Shown here: piece by piece, positions 4,304 through 53,424 of the stretch
How the letters are laid out: each line of letters opens with the position of its first letter
Position numbering within the stretch: the first letter of the stretch is position 1
Source: Octopus bimaculoides
Taxonomy: Eukaryota
Length of the DNA: 54,337 nt
NCBI RefSeq assembly: GCF_001194135.2
Contig: NC_068984.1
Location: 63,360,559-63,414,895, forward strand
Reading direction: 5' to 3'
Made by a program: the position numbers and the translations under genes
The notes under the pieces: model-generated
What the model saw: the letters and a program-made list of their open reading frames with translations, nothing else
What the model was told of the DNA's origin: nothing
The model's database searches: none

Positions 4304-4640
4304 TAAATAATATAAGTATGTACTCGATATGAGACACACGTACATATATATGTATATATATGTAATAATAATACACGTATAAATTTCAGCAATACCAAAA
4401 TATTGGAGCAGAGACATTTGTTTTCTTGGTGTAGATCTGAATGCCGTTTACTTGTAATTTTATTAGTTTCTGATTTCCCATCGGCCACGTGTCAATTTTC
4501 TTTTCGTATCTTCGGGTACGAGAAATTAAGATGAGCTAACGAATAATGATGTATTTTACTCAATCGGCCAATGAAGTTTCTCTCAAAGAAGAATGATTTT
4601 ATACTCGGAAAGCCAAGTTAATATCTAAATAGAAAACAAA

Positions 4641-4835
4641 ACGACGAGTGTCAGAATCGTTGGCACGTCGTCTGTGTTTATGTTGTGAGTTCAAATTCTG
4701 CCGTGCCGAGATCGACTTAACCTTTCATCATTTCGGTGTCGATAAATTAAGTATCAGTTGCGTAATGGCGTCGATCTAATCGATTGGCCCCCTCCCCGAA
4801 GATTTCGGGACTTGTGCATAGTGTAGAGAAAAATA
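4641..4835 (+). mobile_element. SINE family B copy 1 of a tandem pair
   Basis: CAGAATCGTT head, GAGTTCAAATTC B-box, GTCGATAAATTAAGTA core and GTCGATCTAATCGA hairpin, homologous to 36519-36730. Confidence 0.85.
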
Positions 4836-4851
4836 GCTAAATAGAAAATAA

Positions 4852-5040
4852 GGCGTCGACGTGTCAGGATCGTTAGTACGTCGTTTGTCTTTATGCTCTG
4901 AGTTCAAATTCCGCCGAGGTCGACTTTGCCTTTTATCATTTTGGGTCGATAAATTAAGTACCAGTTGATGACTGCGGTTGATGTAAACGACCTATCCCCT
5001 TCCCTGAATTTTCTGGACTTGTGCCATAATTTCAATCTAA
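4852..5040 (+). mobile_element. SINE family B copy 2 of a tandem pair
   Basis: GAGTTCAAATTCCGCCGAGGTCGACTTTGCC...GTCGATAAATTAAGTACCAG. It has the same head deletion as copy 1. Confidence 0.85.
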
Positions 5041-5302
5041 TATTTAAATAGAAAAGGAACCTAGTAAAGTATACCTGTAATCTATAGCATTTTAGATTTG
5101 CTCGTCTACTTTTTCTTCTTTACCATCATACAAAAAGGAAAAACATGTAGAATGTGATTGAAAATTCCTCAGCTGTTTCTCTCAGGCCAAGTGAGCAAGC
5201 CTGATTTACTGCTGTGTTAACTAGAATATTTTAATATCGTGGAACGTAGTTTACTTCATACAGGAAAAATCGTCTTTGATTACGATTTGTGGTTTAAGAC
5301 AT

Positions 5303-8547: not shown

Positions 8548-8591
<44 letters not shown>

Positions 8592-8603
8592 CATACATAC
8601 ATA

Positions 8604-9420
8604 CAACAATTCCACCGAAAATGCCTTCATCACATTTTGAAAATTAAATGGAATTCTTTTCCTCCAAACACATATGTCTTTGAACCTGCAGGCATCACCT
8701 CAATTAAAGCTATGATGTTGAGGAACCAACTGAGATGGTGTTACCATATTGTTCGAATGGCAGATGAAGGCATGCCGAAACAGCTATTTTATGGTGAGCT
8801 TGCAGAGGAGAAACGATATCGGCGTAAACCCAAGAAAAAGTTTAAAGACGGCATAAGGACTTCTATAAAGTTACTTCGAATGGTTCCGTAAGATATAGAA
8901 ACCCTTGCTTCGGATCTAGTGGGATGGCGAACAAAGGTGTGGAGTGGAACAAAAGCATTTGAAGAGTCGAGCATAACGCAAGTAAGACTCAAAAGAGATC
9001 TAAGGAAGAATGTAACGATCGAGAAGGTGAATGACAATAACCTTTTTGTGTGCACAGTTTGTGATAGACCATGCCAGTCTTTTTGCTGGGCTGAAATCTC
9101 ATCTGCGAACCCATGGAAAACGAACCTCCACCAACTATTCTGCCTATATGTCTGTGCACACCTTTCAATGCAGTGTACGCGAAAAGGTTTGCAAATCTAA
9201 CGGAAGCCTCGAAAGACATGTTAAGATACATTAAGAGCCGAACTTATCTGCAGGTATTGGTGGTCCAAATCAGAGGTGCAATTTATGTGGATGTCTTTTC
9301 AGAACATTGTCTGGTTTAAAAAAAGCCACATCAGACGCCATGATGGTGCTAAGGTGTAGGTACAGGAGGTGGTCAAACTCTGTATAAGGGGTAGACAACC
9401 ACCATGTATGTATGTATGTA
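8604..9420 (+). mobile_element. 5'-truncated RTE-clade LINE: ORF2 C-terminus, 3' UTR and (TATG)n tail
   Basis: QQFHRKCLHHILKIKW...QLRWCYHIVRMADEGMPKQLFYGEL...RRKPKKKFKD...W is the typical RTE post-RT region. It has in-frame stops at about 8889 and 9232, frameshifts at 9080 and 9318, C2H2 fingers, a stop at 9357-9359 and a short-tandem-repeat tail. Confidence 0.9.
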
Positions 9421-9498: not shown

Positions 9499-9944
9499 NN
9501 NNNNNNNNNNNNNNNNNNNNNNNNNNNNNNNNNNNNNNNNNNNNNNNNNNNNNNNNNNNNNNNNNNNNNNNNNNNNNNNNNNNNNNNNNNNNNNNNNNNN
9601 NNNNNNNNNNNNNNNNNNNNNNNNNNNNNNNNNNNNNNNNNNNNNNNNNNNNNNNNNNNNNNNNNNNNNNNNNNNNNNNNNNNNNNNNNNNNNNNNNNNN
9701 NNNNNNNNNNNNNNNNNNNNNNNNNNNNNNNNNNNNNNNNNNNNNNNNNNNNNNNNNNNNNNNNNNNNNNNNNNNNNNNNNNNNNNNNNNNNNNNNNNNN
9801 NNNNNNNNNNNNNNNNNNNNNNNNNNNNNNNNNNNNNNNNNNNNNNNNNNNNNNNNNNNNNNNNNNNNNNNNNNNNNNNNNNNNNNNNNNNNNNNNNNNN
9901 NNNNNNNNNNNNNNNNNNNNNNNNNNNNNNNNNNNNNNNNNNNN

Positions 9945-13191: not shown

Positions 13192-14855
13192 GAGTTTGCG
13201 TTGGCAGTCTACTTCCAGTCACCATTGAAGATAGACGTGTAGCTCACGGCTCCGTCTAAGTAACAGAGGACACCGACAGGGTAAACGTATTTGATTTTTT
13301 GTGAGCTGGGTAGAAATATTGTGTTTTTATTTTTACAGTACATTCTGCCCAGCTCTGGGGCATTTCTCTTGTGCTTGGTGGTGTCGAAAATTTGAATATT
13401 TGAGAATATTTGATTGAATTGTTGCCTGTTCCAGGCATAGTGTATGTGGTTGCCTGCTGGTGGGCGTTTCTATGAAATAACTGAGTTCAGCAAGCAGAAA
13501 CCATTTAAAGATGTTGTTTTCTCACTTCGGTCGCTGGATTACGGACCAAGACTATTGTGTGTTTATTTGACTGCAACGGAGTACCAGTTCAAGCCAGGGC
13601 TGGAGAGCGGTGTAGCTCATTTTGTTCCTGTCGAGGATTCTGTGTTTTTCCTTTTTTAAAAAAAAATCTCTTTGTTTACTTTTTCCTTGTTTTTCTCTTT
13701 CTTTTTTTTTCTGTTTCTGTTTCGTTTATTGATCTATTTCATTTTTTCTGAACTGTCATCATTTTGAGACTTTTCTGCGAACAATTATTTCCTGTTTGAA
13801 TATTTAGTTATGGCAGGAAAAAAGTTAAAAGACTACTGCTATGGATTGGGAGATTGTCCCACCCAAGCAGTGACTTGAAGACCTGGAGAAGAGAACGGTG
13901 GTATTACAGACCTATTCTAGGTCACGTGACCCCCATCGCCCTCTTCGATAGGGATATTGTCGATAAAGAACTGGCAAAATGTTTGCCAGCTAAAAAGTAT
14001 TTTGTGTCCAGGGGTGCCAAATATGCAACGGTGTGGTTGCTTTTTGACACCCCTGACGAAGCTTGCATTGCTGCAAGTCAATCTCTAAAAGGGGAATTAA
14101 TATTGTTCCTTCCCACATATTGTGGGAGGAAGGTGATAAGTGTCTGGGTATGTGGTCTACTGTCGGGCACCGAAGCGGAGTGGATTGGAGATACCATCCG
14201 GCAGGGCCTGGGGATAGCGGACCCAAGCTCTTAAATGTAAAAATGACACCGGCGACCGATTGGCAAGGGTCAAAAGCGATTTTGACCCCGTGGAGCCCAT
14301 TGGCCGCGGCCGAAATAGTCTTTCCAGACTTTTTTAAAATGGCTGGCTGCAGGTATCCGGTGATACTTGACGGACGCCCCCCTCCCCAAAGTGTCACTCT
14401 TGCCTTGTGCCAGGCCATATTAAAAAGAACTGCTCCCAGGACCATGGTAAGGTCCTCGAACAGTCACTGGAAGCCACCTCCACTACCCGGTCAAAGGGAG
14501 AGGTGGATGTGGTTGAGGAGGCTTCAGCATCCTCAACCCAAACAGTATTAAAAAGGAAGAAAGTGGGCAACAATGGTTGCCCGCCGAAGGACCCTAAGAC
14601 TTCGGGAGGTGGGGGAGAGACTCCGGACAAAGTGGAAGAGCTCCACTCTCCCGAAGACAGGAAGAAAACAAAGAAAGAAAGAAGAACGGGTCATTGCAGG
14701 TGGACGATGATGTGCCGTCTGCATGTCCCGATGTTGTGCCACCTCATCCCTGAAGATGAACAATTACTTATCTTTTTCTATAAGGGCGTGGAGGTGGAAA
14801 CATAGTAGAGGAACATAAAGAAACAGTAGATATAGCCTGCACACGGGATCCCGAA
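13192..14855 (+). mobile_element. 5' portion (5' UTR plus ORF1) of a non-LTR retrotransposon, probably L1/Tx1-like; ORF2 absent
   Basis: A GC-richer 1.66-kb segment with a T-rich tract at 13650-13750 before ATG 13810, followed by a frameshifted gag-like ORF1. The clade call is inferred from ORF1 architecture. Confidence 0.6.
13810..14805 (+). pseudogene. Frameshifted LINE ORF1 (gag-like; putative RRM region plus CX2CX4HX4C zinc knuckle)
   Basis: Three frames join into MAGKK/VKRLLLWIG...KELAKCLPAKKYFVSRGAKYATVWLLFDTPDEA.../PDFFKMAGCRYPVILDGRPP/KCHSCLVPGHIKKNC (14392-14433), followed by a low-complexity Lys/Glu/Ser-rich tail. Confidence 0.8.
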
Positions 14856-14960
14856 TAGGCTTACAAAGAATAAGTCCTGGAATCGATTTGCTTGACTAAA
14901 AGGCGGTGCTCCAGCATGGCCGCAGTCAAATGACTGAAACAAGGAAAAGAATAAAAGAAT
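14856..14960 (+). mobile_element. SINE family A, last ~105 nt
   Basis: TAGGCTTACAAAGAATAAGTCCTGG...AAAGGCGGTGCTCCAGCATGGCCGCAGTCAAATGACTGAAACAAG matches 31578-31670. Confidence 0.9.
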
Positions 14961-15301
14961 CTCCGGAATATAATTTTATACTTTTATCACTGAAGAGTAT
15001 TCAATTCGTCATTCCATTTATAGCAGACGTCTGGAATAATGACACATGCTAATTTGGAAACTCTACAACCGATTACAATTATTGATCTATGAAAGGGGAA
15101 TGTTTCTTTTTATTTTTAAAGTTCTACATTATATGTTACGTCAATCATGAAAGAACATAGGCTTTCCAGTTTCAGATTTGAGTAGAATGCAAGCCGACAA
15201 CGGCAAATTTATATATTCACAATATATACAAACTACAACAAACAACAAGCACAATGAAGTATAAAGCATAATGCTACTGGTGAATACGCCATCTAAAGTA
15301 T

Positions 15302-15391
15302 AACATGCACACATGTATTTATAGGTATATGAACATGCAAACATGTATGTATAAGCATATGAACATGCACACATGTATATATAAGCATATG
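15302..15391. repeat. 30-bp minisatellite, 3 copies
   Basis: AACATGCACACATGTATATATAAGCATATG units start at 15302, 15332 and 15362. Confidence 0.9.
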
Positions 15392-15875: not shown

Positions 15876-18800
15876 AAATTTTTATCTGGAATTTTAGTAA
15901 AACCAGTCAGTTACCTCATATCAACTAGGCCATAGTTTAAGCTTAATGACATTCCTAAGTGTGATGTATGTTCATATCTATGATATGATTATTCATTCTA
16001 CCGAGGTCCTATTTGAAGGGGACAATTAGTTTAATTGTGTGGTTTGTTTAAAGTTAGGTTTATGGTCCTTCAGATTAATTCTAGTGGTTTTAGGCTCGTA
16101 AGGTTCAGTTTTATCCGCTAAATACCTTTAGCTTGCAGGTTAAATTGTGTAAGGTTGTTAGGATTCGTGACATTATAACTTTTGGTTATTTTTTTTTTCA
16201 GTAGTATATAGTATTGGTATTGGGTTCAATGGATTCTTTTTTCTTAAGCTCCTTAGTTAGGGAATGTAGTTTTTCAAGATGTTGATTTTGGCAATATTTG
16301 TTAGGAACTATTTTACAAAGAGGAAACCATTCCTATAATCGATGGTATCCACCTAAATTCTTTGATAAGAAACATGTGATGCTGGTGATCTTTTTCCCTC
16401 ATATAATTTACTCAATTATATTCAATGGAATCCAAGTTACGATCTTCTAGGCACTTTTAGGTCTGAGTTTGGAACATGAAGCAAAATGTTTTCTTTCTTC
16501 ACATATTAATATATCTACAATTTCATGGCAATTTTTCTCTATAGTCAACTGACTGATCGACTGTGTAGAAACCATTTCGTTTGTCGAGAATGCGATCTGA
16601 TAGAAGTGTAAAATATCAATTCATTCCATTCTTTCATAGATGAAATAACCATGGGCCACTTAACTATATAAACTGAAACATTAAAGCAGTGATGTAAATG
16701 AAAATACTATGTATTAACATTTCTTAGCCCTTCACTGAAATTGTTTCAAGGTAGAATTTTTTTCTTTATTGATTGTTGAAACATAATTATCTTGGATCAT
16801 TGAAAATTACTCTTAACTTCGACACGAATTATACTTCTGCTTATAAAAGAAAATATTGATTTAATGCTATATTATGCTGATTAAATTCAGCCAATAAAAT
16901 ATAAAATGTATCTGTGTGATAAACATTTCAGTCTATTAACTAGAAGTGGCCTCTTAGCTTCTTGTGCTGTTGTAAGTAATTTAGCTTCCAAGAATACTTA
17001 AATTATTCCATATTTGTATTTTTGTTTTCACTGGGATAACATCGATAGTACTTGTCTAACAATCCTTTGGTAAGATATTTTCAATTTGAAAATAAATCAG
17101 TGGACCTATATCTTTCGAAAATCAATATGAGGGGGAGGTTAATGTGCAGCAATTCTTAAAGAAAAGTATTCGATATCAGTAGCTAGTATTATCTATATAT
17201 AGAAACATAGATGTTTAAATATGCACATATCTATAGTAGCTTGTAATTGAATAATTTAAAAAAAGGAGGCGAAAATGTAATATTATATCTGCCAAAATTT
17301 AGTTTGAATGCTTATCCGTATTATATCGTTTCAGATAAAATGTATTCGAAATAGGTTCGATAAGGAAATATGATAACAAATTTACTTTCAAAGTGAAAGG
17401 AAGGTTTGGGCACCTTACAGTTACAAACGAACACACACACACACACACACACACACACGTAAATACATACATATACACAAACACAAAACACACACATACG
17501 CACGCGCAAAGAACACACACGCCACACACACACGTAGACACACATACAGAAGCGCAAACACACACCACACACACCACACGCACACACATGCACACGAATA
17601 TATACATGTATCTGTTTGTATATATATGTACATATTTACATACACGTATGCGTGCGCACGTGTGAGTGTATTTCGAAGTGTATATGTATCAATTTATATT
17701 TGTATGTGTTTGTATTGGTGAGAAGTGCGTTTCATGTAAGCCACCTTCGGAGGCCCATTAAAAGGAAATGCCGTAGGGGTACAGCAGTTCCTACTTAACG
17801 ATAAGATGTATTCGCTTCATACTTGCAAGTGTATGTAGATGTCAATATCTATATAAGCAATGTACGTAAGATTATTTTTTTTAAATAAAAGATGGAAAAT
17901 GTATTAAATTTAAGAAGTGTTCTTCTTTTTTACAGAATTTCGAAGCAAATATACTTTTCCTGAATTACTAATCATTCGGATATATAATGTCTACCGTATA
18001 TTCTGTTTACACAAGCACATACACGTTTAAACATATGCGCAAAACACCTGCACAAAACACACACATACATACACATATTCACATATTTGTGTATGTCCTT
18101 ATGGATACATATGTTTATGTTTTACGTGTGTATATACTTGTATATATTTATATATATACATATGTATATGTATATATACATATACATACATATATACATA
18201 TGTACATATATATATATATATATATATATGAATATAAATATATATATAAACATTAGTATCTATATATATATGCATACACACACACATATATATNNNNNNN
18301 NNNNNNNNNNNNNNNNNNNNNNNNNNNNNNNNNNNNNNNNNNNNNNNNNNNNNNNNNNNNNNNNNNNNNNNNNNNNNNNNNNNNNNNNNNNNNNNNNNNN
18401 NNNNNNNNNNNNNNNNNNNNNNNNNNNNNNNNNNNNNNNNNNNNNNNNNNNNNNNNNNNNNNNNNNNNNNNNNNNNNNNNNNNNNNNNNNNNNNNNNNNN
18501 NNNNNNNNNACACACACACATATATATATATATACATATACATATATATAAGTATGTATTTATGTATGCATATTGATATGCTTGTATATATGCATGTGTA
18601 TGTCTGTATGTATATGGTTTGTGAGAAAGAATAAGAGGGAGACAGAGAATTTGTATAATATATTTATACTGCATCAAAGTTTCTGTATGAACACACAAAA
18701 TGTTTTAAAAATGGGGAAATTTCACGAGTTTGAAAGTGACAAGAGCAGCAGCTGTATATATGCAATGGTTAGCGTGTAACAATCAAAGCAGTTATCGGTG

Positions 18801-19342: not shown

Positions 19343-19552
19343 GTTTCTAATTTTGACTGAACGCCTAAATTTAGGGAGTAGGAATAAGTCTATGAAATCG
19401 ACCCAGAGCTCAAATGGTGATTCTTTTATCTACTCCAAAATTATGAAATACAATGTCGGCTTCGGTGGAATCTGAACTCACAACGTAAAGACAGACTAAA
19501 TAACGCGAAGCGTTTTGTCCGGAGTGCTAAGTATTCTGCTAGCTTGCAGCCT
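19343..19552 (-). mobile_element. SINE family B, diverged
   Basis: AATCGACCCAG...GGAATCTGAACTCACAACGTAAAGAC...TTCTGCTAGCTTGC aligns to the reverse complement of family B. Confidence 0.7.
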
Positions 19553-19928: not shown

Positions 19929-20127
19929 GTACAAAATCTGAAATTTTGGTGAAGGGAGCTAGTCGATTACATCGACCCCGTACTCAACTGGTACTTATTT
20001 TATCGACTTCGAAAGGAGGAAAAGTAAAGTTGAACTTGGCGGTATTTGGATTCTGAAGGTTAAGCCGGTAGAAATACCGTTAAGCATTTTCTCCGGCGTT
20101 CTAACGATTCTGCTAACTCGCTGCCTT
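19929..20127 (-). mobile_element. SINE family B
   Basis: GTCGATTACATCGACCCC..ACTGGTACTTATTTTATCGAC...CTAACGATTCTGCTAACTCGCTGCC. Confidence 0.8.
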
Positions 20128-33160: not shown

Positions 33161-36100
33161 CTAGAAAAACATTTAATAATATAAGCGATAATAGATTTGC
33201 ACAACACCACAATTCTATATGACCTGGGCACACTTGATTCAATCGACGTCAATGATGCGCGTATTTAAAACCAAAACGATATCGTACAGAAGCTAGGCAG
33301 AGAACTGCGGGGAAGGTAACTTAATCTCATTCTGCCATCTAATTGATTCTCTATTCAACGCTTTATCATAGTAAATAATAAACACGTCTTACACGTAATT
33401 TCTTTAAAGAATCGAAGCCTTAGGAATAGATTAGAATCAATGATATTAAATACTCATTGATTTTGCCGAAAGAGAATCAAAGGGAGTGTTTAACAAATAG
33501 GATTCAGAATCGTATCATAGATTACATATTATGTTACATGCAGTTTGCTATTATTCCTGAAAGTGCGTCAGTTCTTTTCATCTTGATTGGATATAATAGA
33601 ATCCAAATGAAATCATTTGCCTCTTCAGGATAAATACAATAAATAAAAAAAGATTTCCAACAAAATTTCTCATGCATAAAGGAAAATTTGACCATTGTTA
33701 ATCATGGTTCCTATGTACTGACCATCATCAGCGCAGCATAATCAACCAGAGTCCACATAGTATGTAGACAGTAGATTGTGAAAAACAATTTTCGATAATA
33801 TTTTGCCTGTAGCTATTTGTATAATATTAAACAAAACTAATCTAATAACTCAGAATTAGTTGGGTATAATTTAGCAAAATGCTTTTGGGAGTTTTATAAG
33901 CACTTTAATAGAAATTCATTAAAAGAAATAGCAAATTCAGAACTAAGCAGTTTTGCATAAACAACAGTCAGTACACCACTAAAAGATATAATCTTTAAGA
34001 ATTACCAGAATGTTTCATTGAACTAACTCCACAGGCATTTCATAGCTATTTCCATGTTTCAAGAACATATGCACCTCACTGATGTCTAGATCCCAGGAAT
34101 TTAATGGTATTCCCATATTTTCATGGTATTCAGAGAATGAGCGCGTGACCTCCGCTAACTACCTTACTACTAATCTTTAATCAGAAATGCGTTTCTCGAT
34201 AGTTACAAAAATAAGTGAAGACTTGCTCGTGGACATCGATCATTGCGTTGTGTATTTAACATGTTTTAATGCCAGGATTATTATTATTAATTTCATAGTT
34301 ATCTACGATGGCACCAACACAAGTTTACTTTTTCAGAATTTGTTATTTTAACGCTCTGAAGCTCTCAGTATTTGTCTGCTTTTAACGCGCTTCTTGCAAA
34401 GCATATCTTGATATTTTTTAAAACTAAATTTCCATTTGTCATGACTGAAAGCTTAAGTTATTCGAATAACTTGTTTATTTTTAATTGCACAATTTGTATT
34501 TGATTTGTGGCTTTTTGCTGTTGTTGTTGGCTTCCATATCATACTGCTGTTATATTCATGAACGGAATAAGTGGACGCCGGGCGCATACTTTCTCCAACA
34601 CTTTTACACAATCTGTGATTGATGTCAACAACACTGGGTAGCGATTTGAATGACGTGCGTAAAAAAATTACCTCAATTGAAATTTTTTCCTTAGCTATAG
34701 AAAATCAAATATCCTTGCAGGAAAGGAAAGGGTGGCGGGGGTTGTATTTTGAGAAATTATAAAAAATTGTTAGAAAGTATGAACATGTAATATTTCTCTT
34801 TTTTCAATACGATTTTCGAGAAGTATGGTCTCAGTAACATCAATATTTTTTTATTTATATTAAACTGTGCCATTATCTTATCTCAATCTCGCTAAATTTT
34901 GCTTAAAAACATGCAAGTTACTCCGGGCTAAAAATGTTAGCCAAATATTTGTTTTTCTGATCAAGCGCAATCGTCTAGCTAGACAAAGGTCACAGATTGG
35001 GTAACGTTTGTAAAAATAATTTTCGGTTTTCTATGATCTTATTCTGTTTTACTGCTAACAATTATTTCTCCATTTTCTTTTGTTTTCCAACTAAAACTTG
35101 AATTCTTTCACGACTGTCATCTAGTTAGCCAACATCTATTGGTTTATTTAAACAATAACAATAAATTATTTGAGTTTTAAAAAATTGCCTTATACAACTT
35201 CATTTCTTAAAATAATCACTTTAAAATATTTGCAAGAATCTTACCTCTTTGTGACGATCAGTTCCATCTTGTCAATTCAGGAGCACAGTATAAATTCTGT
35301 TTATTACATAAACAAATAAAAAAANNNNNNNNNNNNNNNNNNNNNNNNNNNNNNNNNNNNNNNNNNNNNNNNNNNNNNNNNNNNNNNNNNNNNNNNNNNN
35401 NNNNNNNNNNNNNNNNNNNNNNNNNNNNNNNNNNNNNNNNNNNNNNNNNNNNNNNNNNNNNNNNNTACATGTATGTATAAAACAAAACATTTTTCTTCTG
35501 AAAGTTACTATACATATGTAGGATTAGTCTATGCTGAGAGCGTTATTTCACGGATGTTTAAGCTAAAAATCATAGCAAGTTAACGAGGTAGATAACCTTT
35601 TTATAAGAGCTATTTCGATTGGGTGACAATTTCAAAAGAGAATAGCTTTTTTATATAACCTAATAGTCTTTCATATATCATCAGTTCGCATCACAAACAA
35701 AGTGTATACATTGCATCTTAGGCACGTGTGCTTTCCCAAGGATTTTAGTTGAGCCATGTTCATGAAGTGAAAAAGGGTAGACAGAAATTATGTGAAAATC
35801 TTTTGGACAAATTATAAACGTAATTCTAATTTCCAGTATGGTTCGTGTTGATATCATGTTGATATGTCCTGGAAATTAAGGGTGTGCCTAATATTCTGTC
35901 TCTTACACTTTAATTCACGTGCAGATAGTTCAGTTAATCGAACGTCTGAAGTTTCATCATCGAAACAGCAACAAAGAAGTCTCTATTTAATTTTTTACTT
36001 GTTAGAAATAGGCTCCGAATTCCATCAAGGTATGTCACATTAAATAACAAAATGATTTCGCCTGGAATGACATTGATCAATAGTATACTCATTCACGTAG

Positions 36101-36518
36101 CGAAGCAGTAACAATACCAGAGTAACTAAATTTCAGAAAGAATTACATTCCCGAAAATATTGGTATATATGGTTGAGCATCATAATGTTTTACTTCTAAT
36201 AAATACTTCAAAGTAATATCTCAGTAAAATTAGTCAATTTACTGTAAGATTTTATTGATAAAAGGCGTAATGTCCAGCAGAATGTGAAATACCGTAACAT
36301 CATATTCCCAATATACTTTCACAGTCACACGTGAGACCAATATCCGATAATTGAATAAGTTTATTTTCAGTTTAACTCTCAGTTTAACTCTGTGGCGTCA
36401 ATAAATGTTGATGGTTAGTCATAACTCTTACTTCATACAAACACATTATTTATCGAAACATCTTGTTATAAGGATCTCCAATGTATCTGTTTATGCAGCT
36501 GATATTAATAAACTATAA

Positions 36519-36730
36519 GACGGTCAGATGGAAGATTCGTTAGTATGCTGGGCAAAATGCTAAGCGGCATTTGGTGCAGCTTTACGTTCACAGTTCTAAT
36601 TCCACCGAGGTCGACTCTACTTTTCGTCATTTCTGTGTCGATAAAATAAGTTCCAGGTGAGCACTGGGGTCGATGTAATCGACTTACCCCACTCCAAAAT
36701 TTTTCTGGCCTTTTGTCATCATTTTAAACC
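36519..36730 (+). mobile_element. SINE family B, near full length
   Basis: TTCGTTAGTATGCTGGGCAAAATGCTAAGCGGCATTT...CCGAGGTCGACT...GTCGATAAAATAAG...CTGGGGTCGATGTAATCGACTTACCCC. Confidence 0.85.
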
Positions 36731-37204
36731 GACGGGAGCAATTTACTGCAGCATTTAACGGCTCGATATTATAATTTAATTTTAGTTACCTAAATGTAGC
36801 TGAATTTTAGAACGGTCATTCATCTGTTAAGAGAATGGGAATTTTACGTGACTATTACATTAATACACTGACCACTAATTCAATCACTTATTCTTGTGCA
36901 CAAACATTATTATAACACTTATGAATTTTACTATACAACAAAAGGAATAAGATTTTATTGGCCAAAAGATAATCAGGCAAAAGATGTCAATGTATTTTCT
37001 ATACGCTAAATCTAAAAAATATAGTCTTCTTGAATTTTTGGAGTCCTTCAACTATTGCACACGGCTCAAATTACTATTTTAGCTGAGTATGTATCATTAT
37101 GTCTGACATGTGCAATAATTAGTTTGAGCGCTGTAATTTTCACATTGTATTTACTAACTTTAGGTTTTAGCAAAATCATATTATTAATATTGATTTCGAT
37201 ATTC

Positions 37205-37398
37205 GGTACAAGACAATGCGAGTTCGTGGACGGGGCTAAGTCAATTACATGAACTCTAGAGCTTCACTGGTACACATTTTATCGACTCTGAAATGATGAA
37301 AGGCAAAGTCAACCTCAGTGGAATTTGAACTCTGAACGTAAAGCTGCACAGAATGCTGCTAAGCCTTGCGTATTAAGGATTCTGCCAGCTCGCTGCTT
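37205..37398 (-). mobile_element. SINE family B
   Basis: TTTTATCGACTCTGAAATGATGAAAGGCAAAGTCAACCTCAGTGGAATTTGAACTC...GATTCTGCCAGCTCGCTGC. Confidence 0.8.
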
Positions 37399-37431
37399 TC
37401 ATCATATTATTTATATTAGTATCTCTTTTTA

Positions 37432-37598
37432 AGGCGAATGTTTGAGGTGGTACCGCTAACTCGAAGGGCGAAATGGTAAGCAGCATTTCGTCCGTCGTCA
37501 AGTTCTGAGTTCAAATTCCAGCATTGCCGATTTTGCTTTACATCCTTTCGAGGTCAATAAAATAAATACCGGTTGAGCACTGGGGTCGATTTAATCGA
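37432..37598 (+). mobile_element. SINE family B, 3'-truncated just before the LTR
   Basis: GGGCGAAATGGTAAGCAGCATTTCGTCCG...GAGTTCAAATTCC...GAGCACTGGGGTCGATTTAATCGA. Confidence 0.8.
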
Positions 37599-37616
37599 GG
37601 TATTTCATAACACAAC

Positions 37617-38051
37617 TGTTATATATACCGATAAGATAATGAAGAGTGAGAACTTATCCTGTATTTTCCGAAGGTGGGGAGATAAACGTTTGTCAACGAC
37701 CGTTTGGCAGGAGTGAAATAACGTCGGTGTGAATAACCAAATATATATACGGGAAGTTAGCATAGTACGAGACAGGTAACCTTGTTCATTTCCTGTTAAC
37801 GAGCAAGGCAGGTAATCTCGAACTTCCTGTTAAAAAGGGGAGTGGGGAAGACAGCTGGAGCTTGGCGTGAATAGAACCAGAACGAGAGACGGAGCTGCAT
37901 ACTGGTCGGACCGTTCATTACCTACATTGAAACCATTGAGACTGGACATAATCTCCATAAATGAACATTTATTTCCCTGTTTGAACAATTTGTTGTTGCG
38001 ATCAGAAGTTTACCTCTTTTTCTTACATTATTAATTTGTCTGATCGTAATA
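37617..38051 (+). mobile_element. 5' LTR (about 435 bp) of a Gmr1-like Ty3/gypsy retrotransposon
   Basis: Starts TGTTA, ends TAATA (cf. TAACA), and is followed after 3 nt by a tRNA-Pro PBS. Its first 371 bp are repeated inverted at 38671-39041. Confidence 0.85.
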
Positions 38052-38054
38052 AAT

Positions 38055-38078
38055 TGGGGGCTCGCCCGGGATTTGAAC
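38055..38078 (+). promoter_or_regulatory. Primer-binding site complementary to the tRNA-Pro 3' end
   Basis: TGGGGGCTCGCCCGGGATTTGAAC versus the reverse complement of eukaryotic tRNA-Pro, TGGGGGCTCGTCCGGGATTTGAAC (1 mismatch). Confidence 0.9.
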
Positions 38079-38251
38079 TCTCGCACACACATTGTAAAAC
38101 AACTTTACAATTCACCTATGAACTGGTAGATTTTAAGTTTTTTTTTTTTTAAAGGGCTATATACAAAAATTTCTATTGCTAAAATACACATATTACCTGC
38201 ATAATTTTGTATCAACATTCGAAATTCTTCTGGTGAAACCAGTATTTAATC

Positions 38252-38669
38252 ATGGAATTTAAGATTGAAGAATTTATTGAATTTCCCAGTGTGGAGCAAT
38301 TGAGGATTTTTAAAAAAATCAGAATTGTTTTTATTGGCAAGGCATTACGATTTGGTGGAGGCTAAGTCTACCATGAACAAGAAAGAGCTTTTCAAAATGG
38401 TTTTGGAACATTTAGTTGATGAAGAAATTTTCGAAGATTCGGTTTTATCGAACGAAGCAAGTTTGAGTTACGAGGTGGTCAAACTGGCTATTCTAAAAGC
38501 GTATGAACTGGTCCCTGAAGCATATAGACAAAACTTCAGGCAGTCCAAGAAAAGAAGTGAGGATACCTATGTAGAATTTGCTAGAGAGAAGGAAAATTTG
38601 TTTGATAGGTGGTGTGTGTCAAAAGAAGTTGGGGAAGATTTTCACAAACTGAGGCAGCTTATATTATAA
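38252..38669 (+). pseudogene. Internally deleted Gmr1-like Gag with SCAN-related capsid segment
   Basis: MEFKIEEFIEFPSVEQLRIFKK/SELFLLARHY... (frameshift in the A7 run at 38312-38318), then YEVVKLAILKAYELVPEAYRQNFRQ...TYVEFAREKENLFDRWC...LRQLIL, the hallmark of Gmr1-type Gag and SCAN. Confidence 0.85.
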
Positions 38670-38670
38670 G

Positions 38671-39041
38671 TGTTCAAACAGGGAAGTAAATGTTCATTTA
38701 TGGAGATTATGTCTAGTCTCAATGATTTCAAGGTAGGTAGTGAACGGTCCGACCCGTATGCAGCTCCGTCTCTCGTTCTGGTTCTATTCACGCCAAGCCT
38801 CAGCTGTCTTCCCCACTCCCCTTTTTAACAGGAAGTACGAGATTACCTGCCTTGCTCGTTAACAGGAAGTGAACGAGGTTACCTGTCTCGTACCATGCTA
38901 ACTTCCTGTATATATATTTGGTTATTCATGCCGACGTTATTTCACTCCTGCCAAACGGTCGTTGACAAACGTTTATCTCGCCATCTTCGGAAAATATAGG
39001 GTAAGTTCTCACCCTTCATTATCTTATAGGTATACATAACA
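38671..39041 (-). mobile_element. Inverted copy of LTR nt 1-371
   Basis: Reverse complement of 37617-37987 with about 22 substitutions and no indels by manual count (about 94% identity). It ends TAACA, followed by CAAC. Confidence 0.92.
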
Positions 39042-39241
39042 CAACAATGTTAAGTTTTGCCCATTTTTAGAGTAGTCGTTAATAGTTACTTCTGAATCCT
39101 TGTTTCAACAGTCCGATATCGGTTTATCGTGGCAAACAATGCAGATAAAAATAAGATTTGAAATTATTGCATGCAGGATTTAACAGGTCTAGAATAACTC
39201 CGTCATAATCAGCCTATGAACGTCTCAGTCCCGCTTCTTAC

Positions 39242-39481
39242 GTGTATGTGCGTGTGTCTGTATCTATATGTCCAAAATGGCCGACAACGCTCTCTTATCT
39301 CGGTTTGTCAATCCCTATTGATGCACAAAAACCTCCCATGACCAAGGAAGCGGTGACAGAAACGAAAGTGCTGTGATGCACCTGGATATTGCCAAAAGCC
39401 TTTGACGTAGCCTTGTTGGATCTTGGTACCAACACCTTGAGCTGCATCGCTGGGTTAAGTATTCCATGTACTTGAATATGG
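39242..39481 (-). other. Candidate host exon (unassigned)
   Basis: A GC-richer unique block with a minus-strand acceptor TATTTCTTTCAG after a (TG)n tract and a CAC|GTAAGA donor at 39242/39241. Two frames stay open about 55-62 codons, but none spans the block. Confidence 0.3.
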
Positions 39482-41152
39482 CTGAAAGAAATACACACAC
39501 TCACACACACTCACACACACACTCACACACACACACACACACGCACATACATACTTGCATTCATACTAGAGAAGCGTAGTTCGCTATTTGCGTTGATCAT
39601 TTGTATTCTGACTAACCAAAAGTAGATGCTATAATTAGTAATTAACCAATACAGTCGAGATAAAAAAATAAATAATAACAATAGCAATAATAATAATAAT
39701 AACAATAACAACAACGACTACAGCAACAATAATAATGATTGCTGATGTCAAATTTTGACCTAAACGTGTGAGATTGTGAGTTAAGTTTTTCTAAGACTTT
39801 TAAACGCTCTGTTTAGTAGGTATATTCTTTCCTCTTTTTAAAGCAAGATGTCACTGTCCGAAGATAGCTGCAGTCCACAGCTGAAGACAGTAAAAGCATA
39901 AAATAATTCAAATATATCTCGATAGGATTTTTTTAAAAATATCAATCAGGTGAGAAATCGAAAGTTTATTCCTCTGATTTTTTATGTTTTATTATTTTTT
40001 TTTTTTGCATTTCTACATGACGTTCTGATGTACTTTACCACGAAAAGCAAATAGAAAGAAAAACGTCGATATTTAACTTGTATTTGTTTACGTCTATTGC
40101 TATTTACGTATGATTTAACATTTGTTTATCACAGCAGATTCCTATGTTTTCTTCTTTATACAANNNNNNNNNNNNNNNNNNNNNNNNNNNNNNNNNNNNN
40201 NNNNNNNNNNNNNNNNNNNNNNNNNNNNNNNNNNNNNNNNNNNNNNNNNNNNNNNNNNNNNNNNNNNNNNNNNNNNNNNNNNNNNNNNNNNNNNNNNNNN
40301 NNNNNNNNNNNNNNNNNNNNNNNNNNNNNNNNNNNNNNNNNNNNNNNNNNNNNNNNNNNNNNNNNNNNNNNNNNNNNNNNNNNNNNNNNNNNNNNNNNNN
40401 NNNNNNNNNNNNNNNNNNNNNNNNNNNNNNNNNNNNNNNNNNNNNNNNNNNNNNNNNNNNNNNNNNNNNNNNNNNNNNNNNNNNNNNNNNNNNNNNNNNN
40501 NNNNNNNNNNNNNNNNNNNNNNNNNNNNNNNNNNNNNNNNNNNNNNNNNNNNNNNNNNNNNNNNNNNNNNNNNNNNNNNNNNNNNNNNNNNNNNNNNNNN
40601 NNNNNNNNNNNNNNNNNNNNNNNNNNNNNNNNNNNNNNNNNNNNNNNNNNNNNNNNNNNNNNNNNNNNNNNNNNNNNNNNNNNNNNNNNNNNNNNNNNNN
40701 NNNNNNNNNNNNNNNNNNNNNNNNNNNNNNNNNNNNNNNNNNNNNNNATATATATATGTATACATATATATTAATATGCATATATAAGCATACAGGAATA
40801 CACACATGTATATGTTCAAGTGCGTGTGTGTGTACGTATTATATTATGAACGGTTGTTACGTTACTAGGGAACCCAATTCTGTTTTACGAGAGATTTTTC
40901 CGCTCCATCACACTCGGTTATTAAACCTACAGGTTTTCTCAACATTACGGCGCTTGTTTTTATTACTCGCATGTTCTTTATTTCTCTACACTTTCCATTC
41001 TCTCTGAATCTTTGAAGCACATGGGCGCGAAATATCAATCGCTATTATTTTCCTTCCTTTCATCAACGTCAAAAGAATAGTGAGTCTTCATTGAGGTATA
41101 CACACAAATATATACACGTCACCAAGCTACACACACACGCATACACACACTC

Positions 41153-51348: not shown

Positions 51349-53424
51349 TCATCTGAGATAATATTGCGCTAATAGGCATGAGTGTTTTCATGCTCTTAAT
51401 TCAAGTGCGGAGATGCAAGTTCAGAATGACTATGATTACTATCCATCATGAGACATCTTCCAACCTGCAGCTGCTGCATTGAATCAGAGTAAATAATTCC
51501 AAAAGACCCATTTGATTTAAGATGTAAGGAAAAATATCCCTGAGCCTTTGTGAAAATATACACACATGATATATACGGAAATCGGTCCAAATAACGCTGC
51601 ACACAATATTCTTCTTCTCGGACAACAATTGAAAGCAAAAATGATTTACCCACTTGTCTGCACTCTCCGAGCACATTTAATCGATAATTTTCACTATTCG
51701 TACAATCATTTCCCAGCAAAAGTTGTTCACATTAACGTTATGCGGAGCATATTTTTATCATATTTTCCATTTTAATATCGTACCGATTGACTTCACATAA
51801 TTTATTTATGAACATGGGAGTGATTTCTTTTTCGATAAAGCGTCAAATTCATGTGATCTCTCAAAAGTTTCTCGGTAACTTACCACGAATTTATGAGTCT
51901 CTTTAATGTCATGGAAAATTCGATTAGAGCAATCCTACCTACATTTTTACTGTTGTTTCACACAATCATCTAAAACAAAAGGGAAAACTTATACATAAGC
52001 GTAACACCAAGGCACAAAATCAAATTTCAATATCTTTTCAAAAACATTTCAATAAAATACTCTCGATTTTCTACTCGCTTTTTTGTAGATATCGTATACT
52101 AATCAAACGAATGCCTTTTCATAGCCTTTCCTGTTACATCGTTAAGTGTTAATATACTGGATACTCCTCTTCCAGCATCTCCCACTGTCCGAGAAGCAGA
52201 GGAGAAAATACGGGAAACTTGGGAAACAAGATCGCAACATGTGCGAGTGTTTTTCTATCTTCTCCACCTNNNNNNNNNNNNNNNNNNNNNNNNNNNNNNN
52301 NNNNNNNNNNNNNNNNNNNNNNNNNNNNNNNNNNNNNNNNNNNNNNNNNNNNNNNNNNNNNNNNNNNNNNNNNNNNNNNNNNNNNNNNNNNNNNNNNNNN
52401 NNNNNNNNNNNNNNNNNNNNNNNNNNNNNNNNNNNNNNNNNNNNNNNNNNNNNNNNNNNNNNNNNNNNNNNNNNNNNNNNNNNNNNNNNNNNNNNNNNNN
52501 NNNNNNNNNNNNNNNNNNNNNNNNNNNNNNNNNNNNNNNNNNNNNNNNNNNNNNNNNNNNNNNNNNNNNNNNNNNNNNNNNNNNNNNNNNNNNNNNNNNN
52601 NNNNNNNNNNNNNNNNNNNNNNNNNNNNNNNNNNNNNNNNNNNNNNNNNNNNNNNNNNNNNNNNNNNNNNNNNNNNNNNNNNNNNNNNNNNNNNNNNNNN
52701 NNNNNNNNNNNNNNNNNNNNNNNNNNNNNNNNNNNNNNNNNNNNNNNNNNNNNNNNNNNNNNNNNNNNNNNNNNNNNNNNNNNNNNNNNNNNNNNNNNNN
52801 NNNNNNNNNNNNNNNNNNNNNNNNNNNNNNNNNNNNNNNNNNNNNNNNNNNNNNNNNNNNNNNNNNNNNNNNNNNNNNNNNNNNNNNNNNNNNNNNNNNN
52901 NNNNNNNNNNNNNNNNNNNNNNNNNNNNNNNNNNNNNNNNNNNNNNNNNNNNNNNNNNNNNNNNNNNNNNNNNNNNNNNNNNNNNNNNNNNNNNNNNNNN
53001 NNNNNNNNNNNNNNNNNNNNNNNNNNNNNNNNNNNNNNNNNNNNNNNNNNNNNNNNNNNNNNNNNNNNNNNNNNNNNNNNNNNNNNNNNNNNNNNNNNNN
53101 NNNNNNNNNNNNNNNNNNNNNNNNNNNNNNNNNNNNNNNNNNNNNNNNNNNNNNNNNNNNNNNNNNNNNNNNNNNNNNNNNNNNNNNNNNNNNNNNTGTG
53201 AGTGTGTGTGTGTATATACATATATATATATATATATATATGTTTGTGTGTACGTACGTATATGTATGTATATAGATCTGTATGTTGTACGTTACTCTGC
53301 TGTGTAGGACAGAGCCGCAAACCAATATAAACACACATGGTTACAAAATCCTGCTTACATATATTATATCCGTAGACACTTGTGAGTTCACGAAATGCAT
53401 GTGCTGGTATTTNNNNNNNNNNTT

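Follow-up and report, generated by a model that had tools for sequence, protein, structure and literature searches.

The element described here occupies positions 37613–39045 of a 54,337-nucleotide stretch of the Octopus bimaculoides genome (contig NC_068984.1), which is referred to below, at its full length, as the window and whose numbering is used throughout. It comprises a long terminal repeat (LTR), a primer-binding site (PBS), a leader, a decayed gag with an internal deletion and an inverted LTR copy, and it carries the U3 end of an LTR at each of its outer termini. Tentatively, and with confidence a little short of even, the unit is read as a one-off snap-back complementary DNA (cDNA) of a Gmr1-like (SCAN-gag) LTR retrotransposon, produced by faulty reverse transcription and inserted as a unit. 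Much the same had been proposed in the initial annotation, as a fold-back template switch followed by insertion of the product. That proposal gained from a 9-nt microhomology at the inner joint and from the exact stop of the inverted LTR at the first base of U3, and lost the clean 4-bp target-site duplication (TSD) with which it had been linked.

Inverted arms and outer ends

An inverted repeat of 374 nt was delimited by a repeat search and by direct comparison of its arms. The left arm lies at 37617–37990 on the plus strand (LTR nt 1–371 and 3 nt more, beginning TGTTAT), and the right arm at 38668–39041 on the minus strand (inverted LTR from nt 371, with the same 3 nt, to nt 1, finishing ...ATAACA). 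Mismatches were found at 23 of the 374 sites (17 transitions and 6 transversions), 22 of them within the first 371, and there were no indels, in agreement with the roughly 22 differences in 371 sites first reported. The Kimura two-parameter distance between the arms was 0.065, and the longest identical runs common to both reached up to 49 nt. These two LTR copies, the only ones in the window, are inverted and not direct relative to each other. A TATA-like sequence, ATATATATAC, is present at LTR nt 125–134 of the left arm (plus strand).

The repeat halts sharply at both outer ends, and the termini are of the TG...CA type (TGTTAT... at 37617 and ...ATAACA at 39041). Directly outside the left arm stands CAAC (37613–37616), and directly outside the right arm stands a second CAAC (39042–39045), followed by non-repetitive flank, so that the ends TGTTA...TAACA with CAAC on both sides were recovered as first described. 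Four equal base pairs on the two sides would be met by chance with a probability of ~0.006 at the local base composition. The right arm reaches exactly nt 1 of U3, and what follows there is CAAC; GTTG and the left flank in reverse complement, as expected had a fold-back or an inverted duplication in the chromosome continued past the LTR start, are not seen. Both of these origins were therefore rejected, and the simplest source of an exact stop at LTR nt 1 would be a free linear cDNA end, that is, run-off at the 5′ end of a plus strand. A domain search of the right flank returned no retroelement domains, on which ground nesting of the unit within another copy was also rejected.

Two further observations were made within the arms. 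At LTR nt 112–113 (37728–37729 and 38929–38930) the left arm has TG and the right arm CA, as if a single ancestral CpG had decayed separately on each strand, and CpG transitions were also found among several other arm differences (nt 135 and 167). Both arms contain a purine-rich stretch, AAAAAGGGGAGTGGGGAAGA (37833–37852 and 38806–38825; LTR nt 216–235), which resembles a polypurine tract (PPT) but is misplaced for one.

gag remnant and inner joint

Downstream of the leader, the plus strand holds a decayed gag remnant at 38252–38669, with an ATG at 38252 and a stop at 38667–38669. It opens with MEFKIEEFIEFPSVEQLR... (N-terminus MEFKIEEF...), is broken by a single frameshift near 38320, and continues in the 38325–38669 frame to ...KLRQLIL-stop, with a SCAN-like capsid domain of which the first half is present. 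The Pfam SCAN match (E = 8e-5, 22.8 bits) fell below the curated cut-off of 27 bits because only profile positions 1–37 are present, and most of the best gag homologues carry PF02023. The SCAN domain is homologous to the capsid C-terminus of the gag of Gmr1-like gypsy elements (PMC4592553). The label 'Gmr1-like' could accordingly be retained from the initial annotation, with the SCAN-type capsid domain as its sole basis because pol, in which Gmr1-like elements have integrase upstream of reverse transcriptase, is absent from the unit.

In protein searches with gag, identity did not exceed 71%, except for a protein of Octopus vulgaris (P0059) with 79% over the N-terminus. The locus of this protein (L001; OX597815.1) was the closest relative reached, its gag DNA being 85–86% identical to window positions 38252–38449 and 38444–38680. 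Compared with it, the octopus unit has lost ~328 bp of gag at 38444–38449, where the alignment edges overlap by 6 nt and the edges of the deletion fall on the short repeat TTT(A/G)TC. L001 yielded neither pol nor an LTR or leader related to those of the window; its sequence is interrupted after the CCHC knuckle by a long interspersed nuclear element (LINE). Another locus, L002, was rejected as an informative relative on account of its unrelated SCAN gene context.

The alignment of gag with L001 passes through the supposed LTR boundary. The 9-mer at the joint, GTTCAAACA (38672–38680, plus strand), belongs to gag, where it corresponds to the EFKQ codons of the O. vulgaris relative, and is at the same time the reverse complement of LTR nt 362–370, whose copy in the U5 side of the left arm, TGTTTGAAC, lies at 37978–37986 (plus strand). 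Around the joint, L001 reads ...CAGCTTATATTATTAGAGGAGTTCAAACAATG (LILLEEFKQ) and the window ...CAGCTTATATTATAAGTGTTCAAACAGGG; in the shorter comparison the two read ...CTTATATTATTAGAGGAGTTCAAACAATG and ...CTTATATTATAAGTGTTCAAACAGGG, respectively. EEFK was conserved in all gag homologues read. By our estimate, a given 9-mer would be expected within ~20 nt of the breakpoint ~8e-5 times by chance. With the gag deletion, two microhomology joints are thus contained within one unit.

Because of the 9-nt microhomology with gag, the inner end of the arm is not evidence of a natural LTR end, and to judge by its sequence the inner joint resembles one left by strand switching or end-joining. Attachment of a U5 end to gag by integrase, in a nested insertion or by autointegration, was considered and rejected, since it would leave the 9-nt match with gag to a coincidence of ~1e-5.

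Primer-binding site and extent of the LTR

The PBS, TGGGGGCTCGCCCGGGATTTGAACTC (38055–38080, plus strand), consists of 26 nt complementary to the 3′ end of tRNA-Pro, spanning the T-arm, the acceptor strand, the discriminator base and CCA. Thirteen of 14 of its nucleotides are identical to a human tRNA-Pro reverse primer printed in PMC10899773. Neither Rfam nor ARAGORN gave a match at the PBS or elsewhere on the locus, and because CCA is not gene-encoded, the site was identified as a PBS and not as a tRNA-gene fragment. Between the end of the arm and the PBS lies a 67-nt spacer (37988–38054, plus strand), which is absent from the inverted arm and is probably the rest of U5. The leader follows the PBS at 38081–38251 (plus strand) and contains a run of 13 T.

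In the reverse transcription scheme of LTR elements, U5 comprises everything from R to the PBS and belongs to the LTR. The natural LTR most likely extends to about 38054, and the inverted arm would then be without the last ~66 nt of U5; truncation of this arm in U5 is probable because the PBS is found 67 nt beyond the arm end at 37987. Set against a longer LTR is the look of TGTT...AACA, which resembles a proper LTR end. Two descriptions in the initial annotation are affected. The order of 5′ LTR, PBS, leader, deleted gag and inverted LTR stands, with the correction that the PBS does not adjoin the arm. The portrayal of the inverted copy as a whole LTR running from nt 371 to nt 1 was given up, its inner end falling on the gag microhomology and the PBS lying further in.

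The spacer itself holds an 8-bp inverted repeat, CGATCAGA and TCTGATCG (37999–38006 and 38039–38046), and an AATAAA at 38048. By analogy with other retroelements, the 8-bp stem before the PBS may be a U5/leader stem.

Proposed formation of the unit

In the snap-back account, synthesis of a plus-sense DNA strand would have begun at U3 nt 1, taken in U5, the tRNA-Pro PBS and the leader, and reached into a gag shortened beforehand. The 3′ end of this strand (...GTTCAAACA) would then have annealed to a complementary stretch, TGTTTGAAC, in the U5 of a plus-sense partner, which was either the strand's own 5′ part, as a snap-back, or a second plus strand. Extension would have proceeded back to the physical 5′ end of the partner, at U3 nt 1, and the product, ~1.43 kb long, would have a U3 terminus facing outward at either end (TGTTA...TAACA). 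Entry into the chromosome beside CAAC was probably brought about by integrase acting on the two U3 ends, after which arms presumably identical at birth would have diverged by ~6.5%. A precedent is provided by template-switched complex LTR elements that have integrated with TSDs (PMC1950507).

An ordinary route to the same arrangement is also conceivable. Two copies of the family could have inserted tail-to-tail in the same target, as A(+)-CAAC-B(-)-CAAC, with ~10 kb later deleted between direct repeats of GTTCAAACA, one in the gag of A and one in the reverse-complemented U5 of B; the arms would then be the 5′ LTRs of A and B. Such a double insertion predicts the same outer CAAC tetranucleotides, the exact U3 ends, a right arm truncated in U5 and the 9-nt microhomology, and an arm divergence of 6.5% would be unremarkable between two members of a family. 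Microhomology deletions are the usual decay route of LTR elements. In Drosophila, head-to-head and tail-to-tail LTR tandems with the target site in the junction have been attributed to double insertion (PMC5932611). Against these points, two deletions are required on top of two insertions into an identical 4-bp target, pol, the PPT and the other LTR parts would have left no trace in the window, and a strong target preference would have to be granted to the family without independent evidence. The double insertion, the chief competing account, is considered possible, on the unlikely side.

Left flank

The sequence outside the left CAAC bears on both accounts. A copy of a tRNA-derived short interspersed nuclear element (SINE) of octopus type lies at 37466–37597 (plus strand) and is 3′-truncated exactly where a stretch resembling an LTR end begins. 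Six further copies in the window share 70–76% identity with it and run on as ...AATCGAC-TTA(C/G)CCCC..., whereas this copy breaks after AATCGA. The adjoining stretch, designated X1 (37598–37612, minus strand), is a 14–15-nt copy of the U3 terminus of the LTR, GGTATTTCATAACA, situated outside the element, and overlaps the SINE by 1 nt (A) at their joint. It matches the end of the right arm at 39028–39041 (GGTATACATAACA), with TT replacing A, and at LTR nt 7 it has the base of the right arm. X1 together with CAAC forms a direct repeat of ~18 nt, in which 37597–37616 (AGGTATTTCATAACACAAC) corresponds to 39027–39045 (AGGTATACATAACACAAC), that is, to the last 14 nt of the inverted LTR and CAAC.

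X1 could not be assigned to the tail of the SINE itself, because the six other copies continue otherwise, and chance was rejected because an anchored 7-mer and 6-mer would be too rare. CATAACACAAC occurs only twice in the window, in X1 and at the end of the right arm, and CATAACA has five plus-strand occurrences in the 54 kb, its reverse complement six. An unanchored local-alignment test of X1 was weak, ~1% of random 25-mers scoring alike in a window rich in TA repeats.

The clean 4-bp TSD of the initial annotation was not sustained, because the ~18-nt repeat contains 14 nt of element end and stands beside a truncated SINE. On sequence grounds, the left junction either adjoins the stump of another copy or arose by end-joining. 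Under the snap-back account, X1 might be the remnant of a neighbouring minus-oriented or tandem copy that shared CAAC and was later deleted together with the tail of the SINE; or it might be part of a templated 18-nt filler copied from the right junction during end-joining on the left, in which case the left CAAC would be no integrase footprint. For the double insertion, X1 would be the stump of a further copy. It would then attest that at least one more LTR end once adjoined CAAC at this site, and it would raise the number of hits on the same 4 bp from two to three.

The filler can also be made the centre of an account of its own, in which a snap-back cDNA entered without concerted integration: the left end would have been end-joined to a break in the SINE with 18 nt of filler from the right junction, one end or neither would have been joined by integrase, and the left CAAC would be part of the filler and not of a TSD. 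A single event would thereby explain the truncated SINE, the 1-nt overlap (A) and the repeat of LTR end and flank, and the state of X1 at LTR nt 7 would follow from its template. Opposed to this are the termini, neither of which has lost a single base, an unusual outcome for capture by end-joining, and the filler itself, which differs from its supposed template (TT for A). This account was judged distinctly unlikely.

On the right flank, the first five bases of the LTR (TGTTA) recur 2 nt past the right CAAC, as CAAC-AA-TGTTAAG (39046–39052), and the joined flanks, X1 included, would read TAACA-CAACAA-TGTTA, a short palindrome. This palindrome may be due to chance or hint at a target preference.

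Assembly context and evidence against a snap-back origin

The window is a scaffolded draft with 13 runs of N (for example 9499–9944, 40164–40747 and 52270–53196), so that structural claims within it need read support. The gaps closest to the unit are those at 35325–35465 and 40164–40747, and 35466–40163 is free of N. A chimeric contig, in which paralogous LTR copies were joined in a gapped short-read draft, would accord with the 13 gaps and with arms sharing identical runs of up to 49 nt. It would have had to arise in a stretch without N and with coherent flanks on both sides, from arms that constitute separate paths since 23 sites differ between them; moreover, a k-mer misjoin keeps orientation and would not make a gag-to-inverted-LTR joint with a mere 9-nt overlap. 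An artefact was therefore regarded as very improbable.

Several findings nevertheless count against the snap-back origin. The arrangement is known from assembled sequence alone, in a gapped draft. A direct repeat of ~18 nt that includes 14 nt of element end is not the yield of a single concerted integration, and an extra event must therefore be assumed. At the inner joint the register is imperfect, the window having TAAGT where the relative has TTAGAGGA, which is 3 nt longer and with mismatches, and the joint was read against the O. vulgaris relative and not against the gag or the LTR 3′ end of the element's own family. Finally, no other LTR of the family was found in the window or in the protein, metagenome and viral collections by which the arms could be shown to have been identical at birth.

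Copy number and capacity for movement

No second copy of the unit was found within the window, nor were pol, a PPT or further LTR parts found elsewhere in it. An exact look-up of the gag open reading frame (ORF) ending at the junction gave nothing on record in public assemblies, peptides translated from the open stretches of LTR and leader, used as a probe for spurious gene calls in other LTR copies, had no match among 5.8 billion proteins, and exact scans of metagenome contigs, with an LTR 25-mer and a gag 31-mer, and of viral contigs gave no match. The missing further copies are weak evidence, the protein, metagenome and viral collections not holding the source genome.

Neither U3 end is adjoined by a purine run, the sole run of at least 12 nt lying inside gag, and no sense-oriented R is present on the 3′ side of the unit. 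Because PPT and sense 3′ R are both absent, the unit cannot retrotranspose again by the canonical LTR cycle: an RNA started in the left LTR would be unable to carry out the first strand transfer or to prime plus-strand synthesis, and the unit is dead. The suggestion in the initial annotation that the locus could represent a repeated non-autonomous class thus found no support, either in these structures or in a second copy in the window or the collections reached. Both LTRs of the unit face inward, and folding predicted a hairpin with a stem of ~370 bp and a minimum free energy of -815 kcal/mol. The sole plausible activity of the unit, as modelled, would be that of a source of hairpin RNA or convergent transcripts, if it is transcribed, and a role as a source of small RNA is conceivable.

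Comparison with known systems

The unit resembles complex LTR insertions ascribed to aberrant template switching within the particle (Sabot & Schulman 2007, PMC1950507; rice survey, bioRxiv 10.1101/452573) in that a cDNA rearranged in one round, with intact outer termini and short flanking repeats, is inferred to have entered by a single integration. Those insertions are of the form LTR-internal-LTR-internal-LTR with all LTRs direct, whereas the octopus unit has its second LTR inverted and a U3 end on each outer side, in a length of only 1.4 kb; the word 'inverted' is absent from the texts of PMC1950507 and bioRxiv 10.1101/452573. Inverted LTR tandems (McGurk & Barbash 2018, PMC5932611) likewise have opposite LTR ends parted by a copy of the target site, as in X1-CAAC-LTR(+), but consist of two full elements, where the octopus locus has a 14-nt stump and a 1.4-kb unit and its CAAC is not palindromic.

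Inverted terminal repeats are the normal state of a retroelement in DIRS. DIRS elements have a tyrosine recombinase, an internal complementary region and no TSD. The octopus unit differs in its tRNA PBS, SCAN-type gag, TG..CA ends, flanking repeat and an inverted arm that starts at a gag microhomology joint; its body holds PBS, leader and gag only. Terminal-repeat retrotransposons in miniature (TRIM) and large retrotransposon derivatives (LARD) are similarly LTR-derived, without pol and short, but retain LTRs in direct orientation along with PBS and PPT and occur in many copies, whereas the unit has neither PPT nor sense 3′ R and is known from one copy. In shape it is like MITEs (miniature inverted-repeat transposable elements) and Foldback elements, a short body being bounded by long terminal inverted repeats and the whole by a short repeat in the flanks. 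These, however, are repeated families moved by a transposase, and here LTRs that carry a promoter-like TATA take the place of terminal inverted repeats around a body of PBS and gag, and there is no sign of repetition.

By definition, then, the unit has the TG...CA termini of an LTR retrotransposon and departs from one in lacking direct LTRs and a PPT; it has none of the features that define DIRS, and it fails as a MITE or Foldback element on repetition and on means of movement. The locus is a decayed curiosity, to all appearance single-copy, rated as an aberrant product of reverse transcription or rearrangement, and is no evidence of a new class of element.

Other features of the window and of the relative locus

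Seven copies of the tRNA-derived SINE family were seen in the window, at 4619–5055 (a tandem pair), 19383–19501, 19963–20089, 36550–36700, 37241–37360 and 37466–37597, as fits an octopus genome, to which the best gag relative also points. The runs of N often adjoin microsatellites. ORFs of 112–162 aa were noted at 8553–8891 and 13854–14805, and Pfam gave zero matches for either. Inspected by eye, the ORF at 8553–8891 could be taken for a LINE ORF2 C-terminal tail; the frame at 14407–14805 is basic and serine-rich. At L001, a 340-bp tandem duplication (13765–14439) downstream of the gag relative overlaps the start of the LINE reverse-transcriptase ORF (14227–15378), and positions 16275–16646 form a spacer-less palindrome of 372 nt that is 90% self-complementary.

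Significance

At present, with one decayed copy seen in a draft assembly and its left junction untidy, the locus is of value as a worked example and, through its junction sequences, as a search seed. Transposon ends duplicated in inverted orientation can act as hairpin-RNA silencers, as does Mu killer in maize. The unit is like that type in being an inverted partial element copy that, as predicted from its sequence, would form a long hairpin if transcribed. A far-reaching extension, which is offered as conjecture and seems most improbable, is that integrases of the Ty3/gypsy type insert two-U3 snap-back cDNAs, and that fold-back units are recurrent in cephalopods and serve as sources of small RNA against their own family by way of convergent LTR promoters and the ~370-bp hairpin.

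Should the snap-back account be true, the locus would be a natural record of a rare error of reverse transcription, in which a 9-nt microhomology served for an inverted strand switch. A two-U3 unit would also be shown to be capable of entering a chromosome, with a bearing on the strictness of the requirement of integrase for a U3/U5 pair, and the octopus would be provided with a ready-made hairpin locus against the element's own family.

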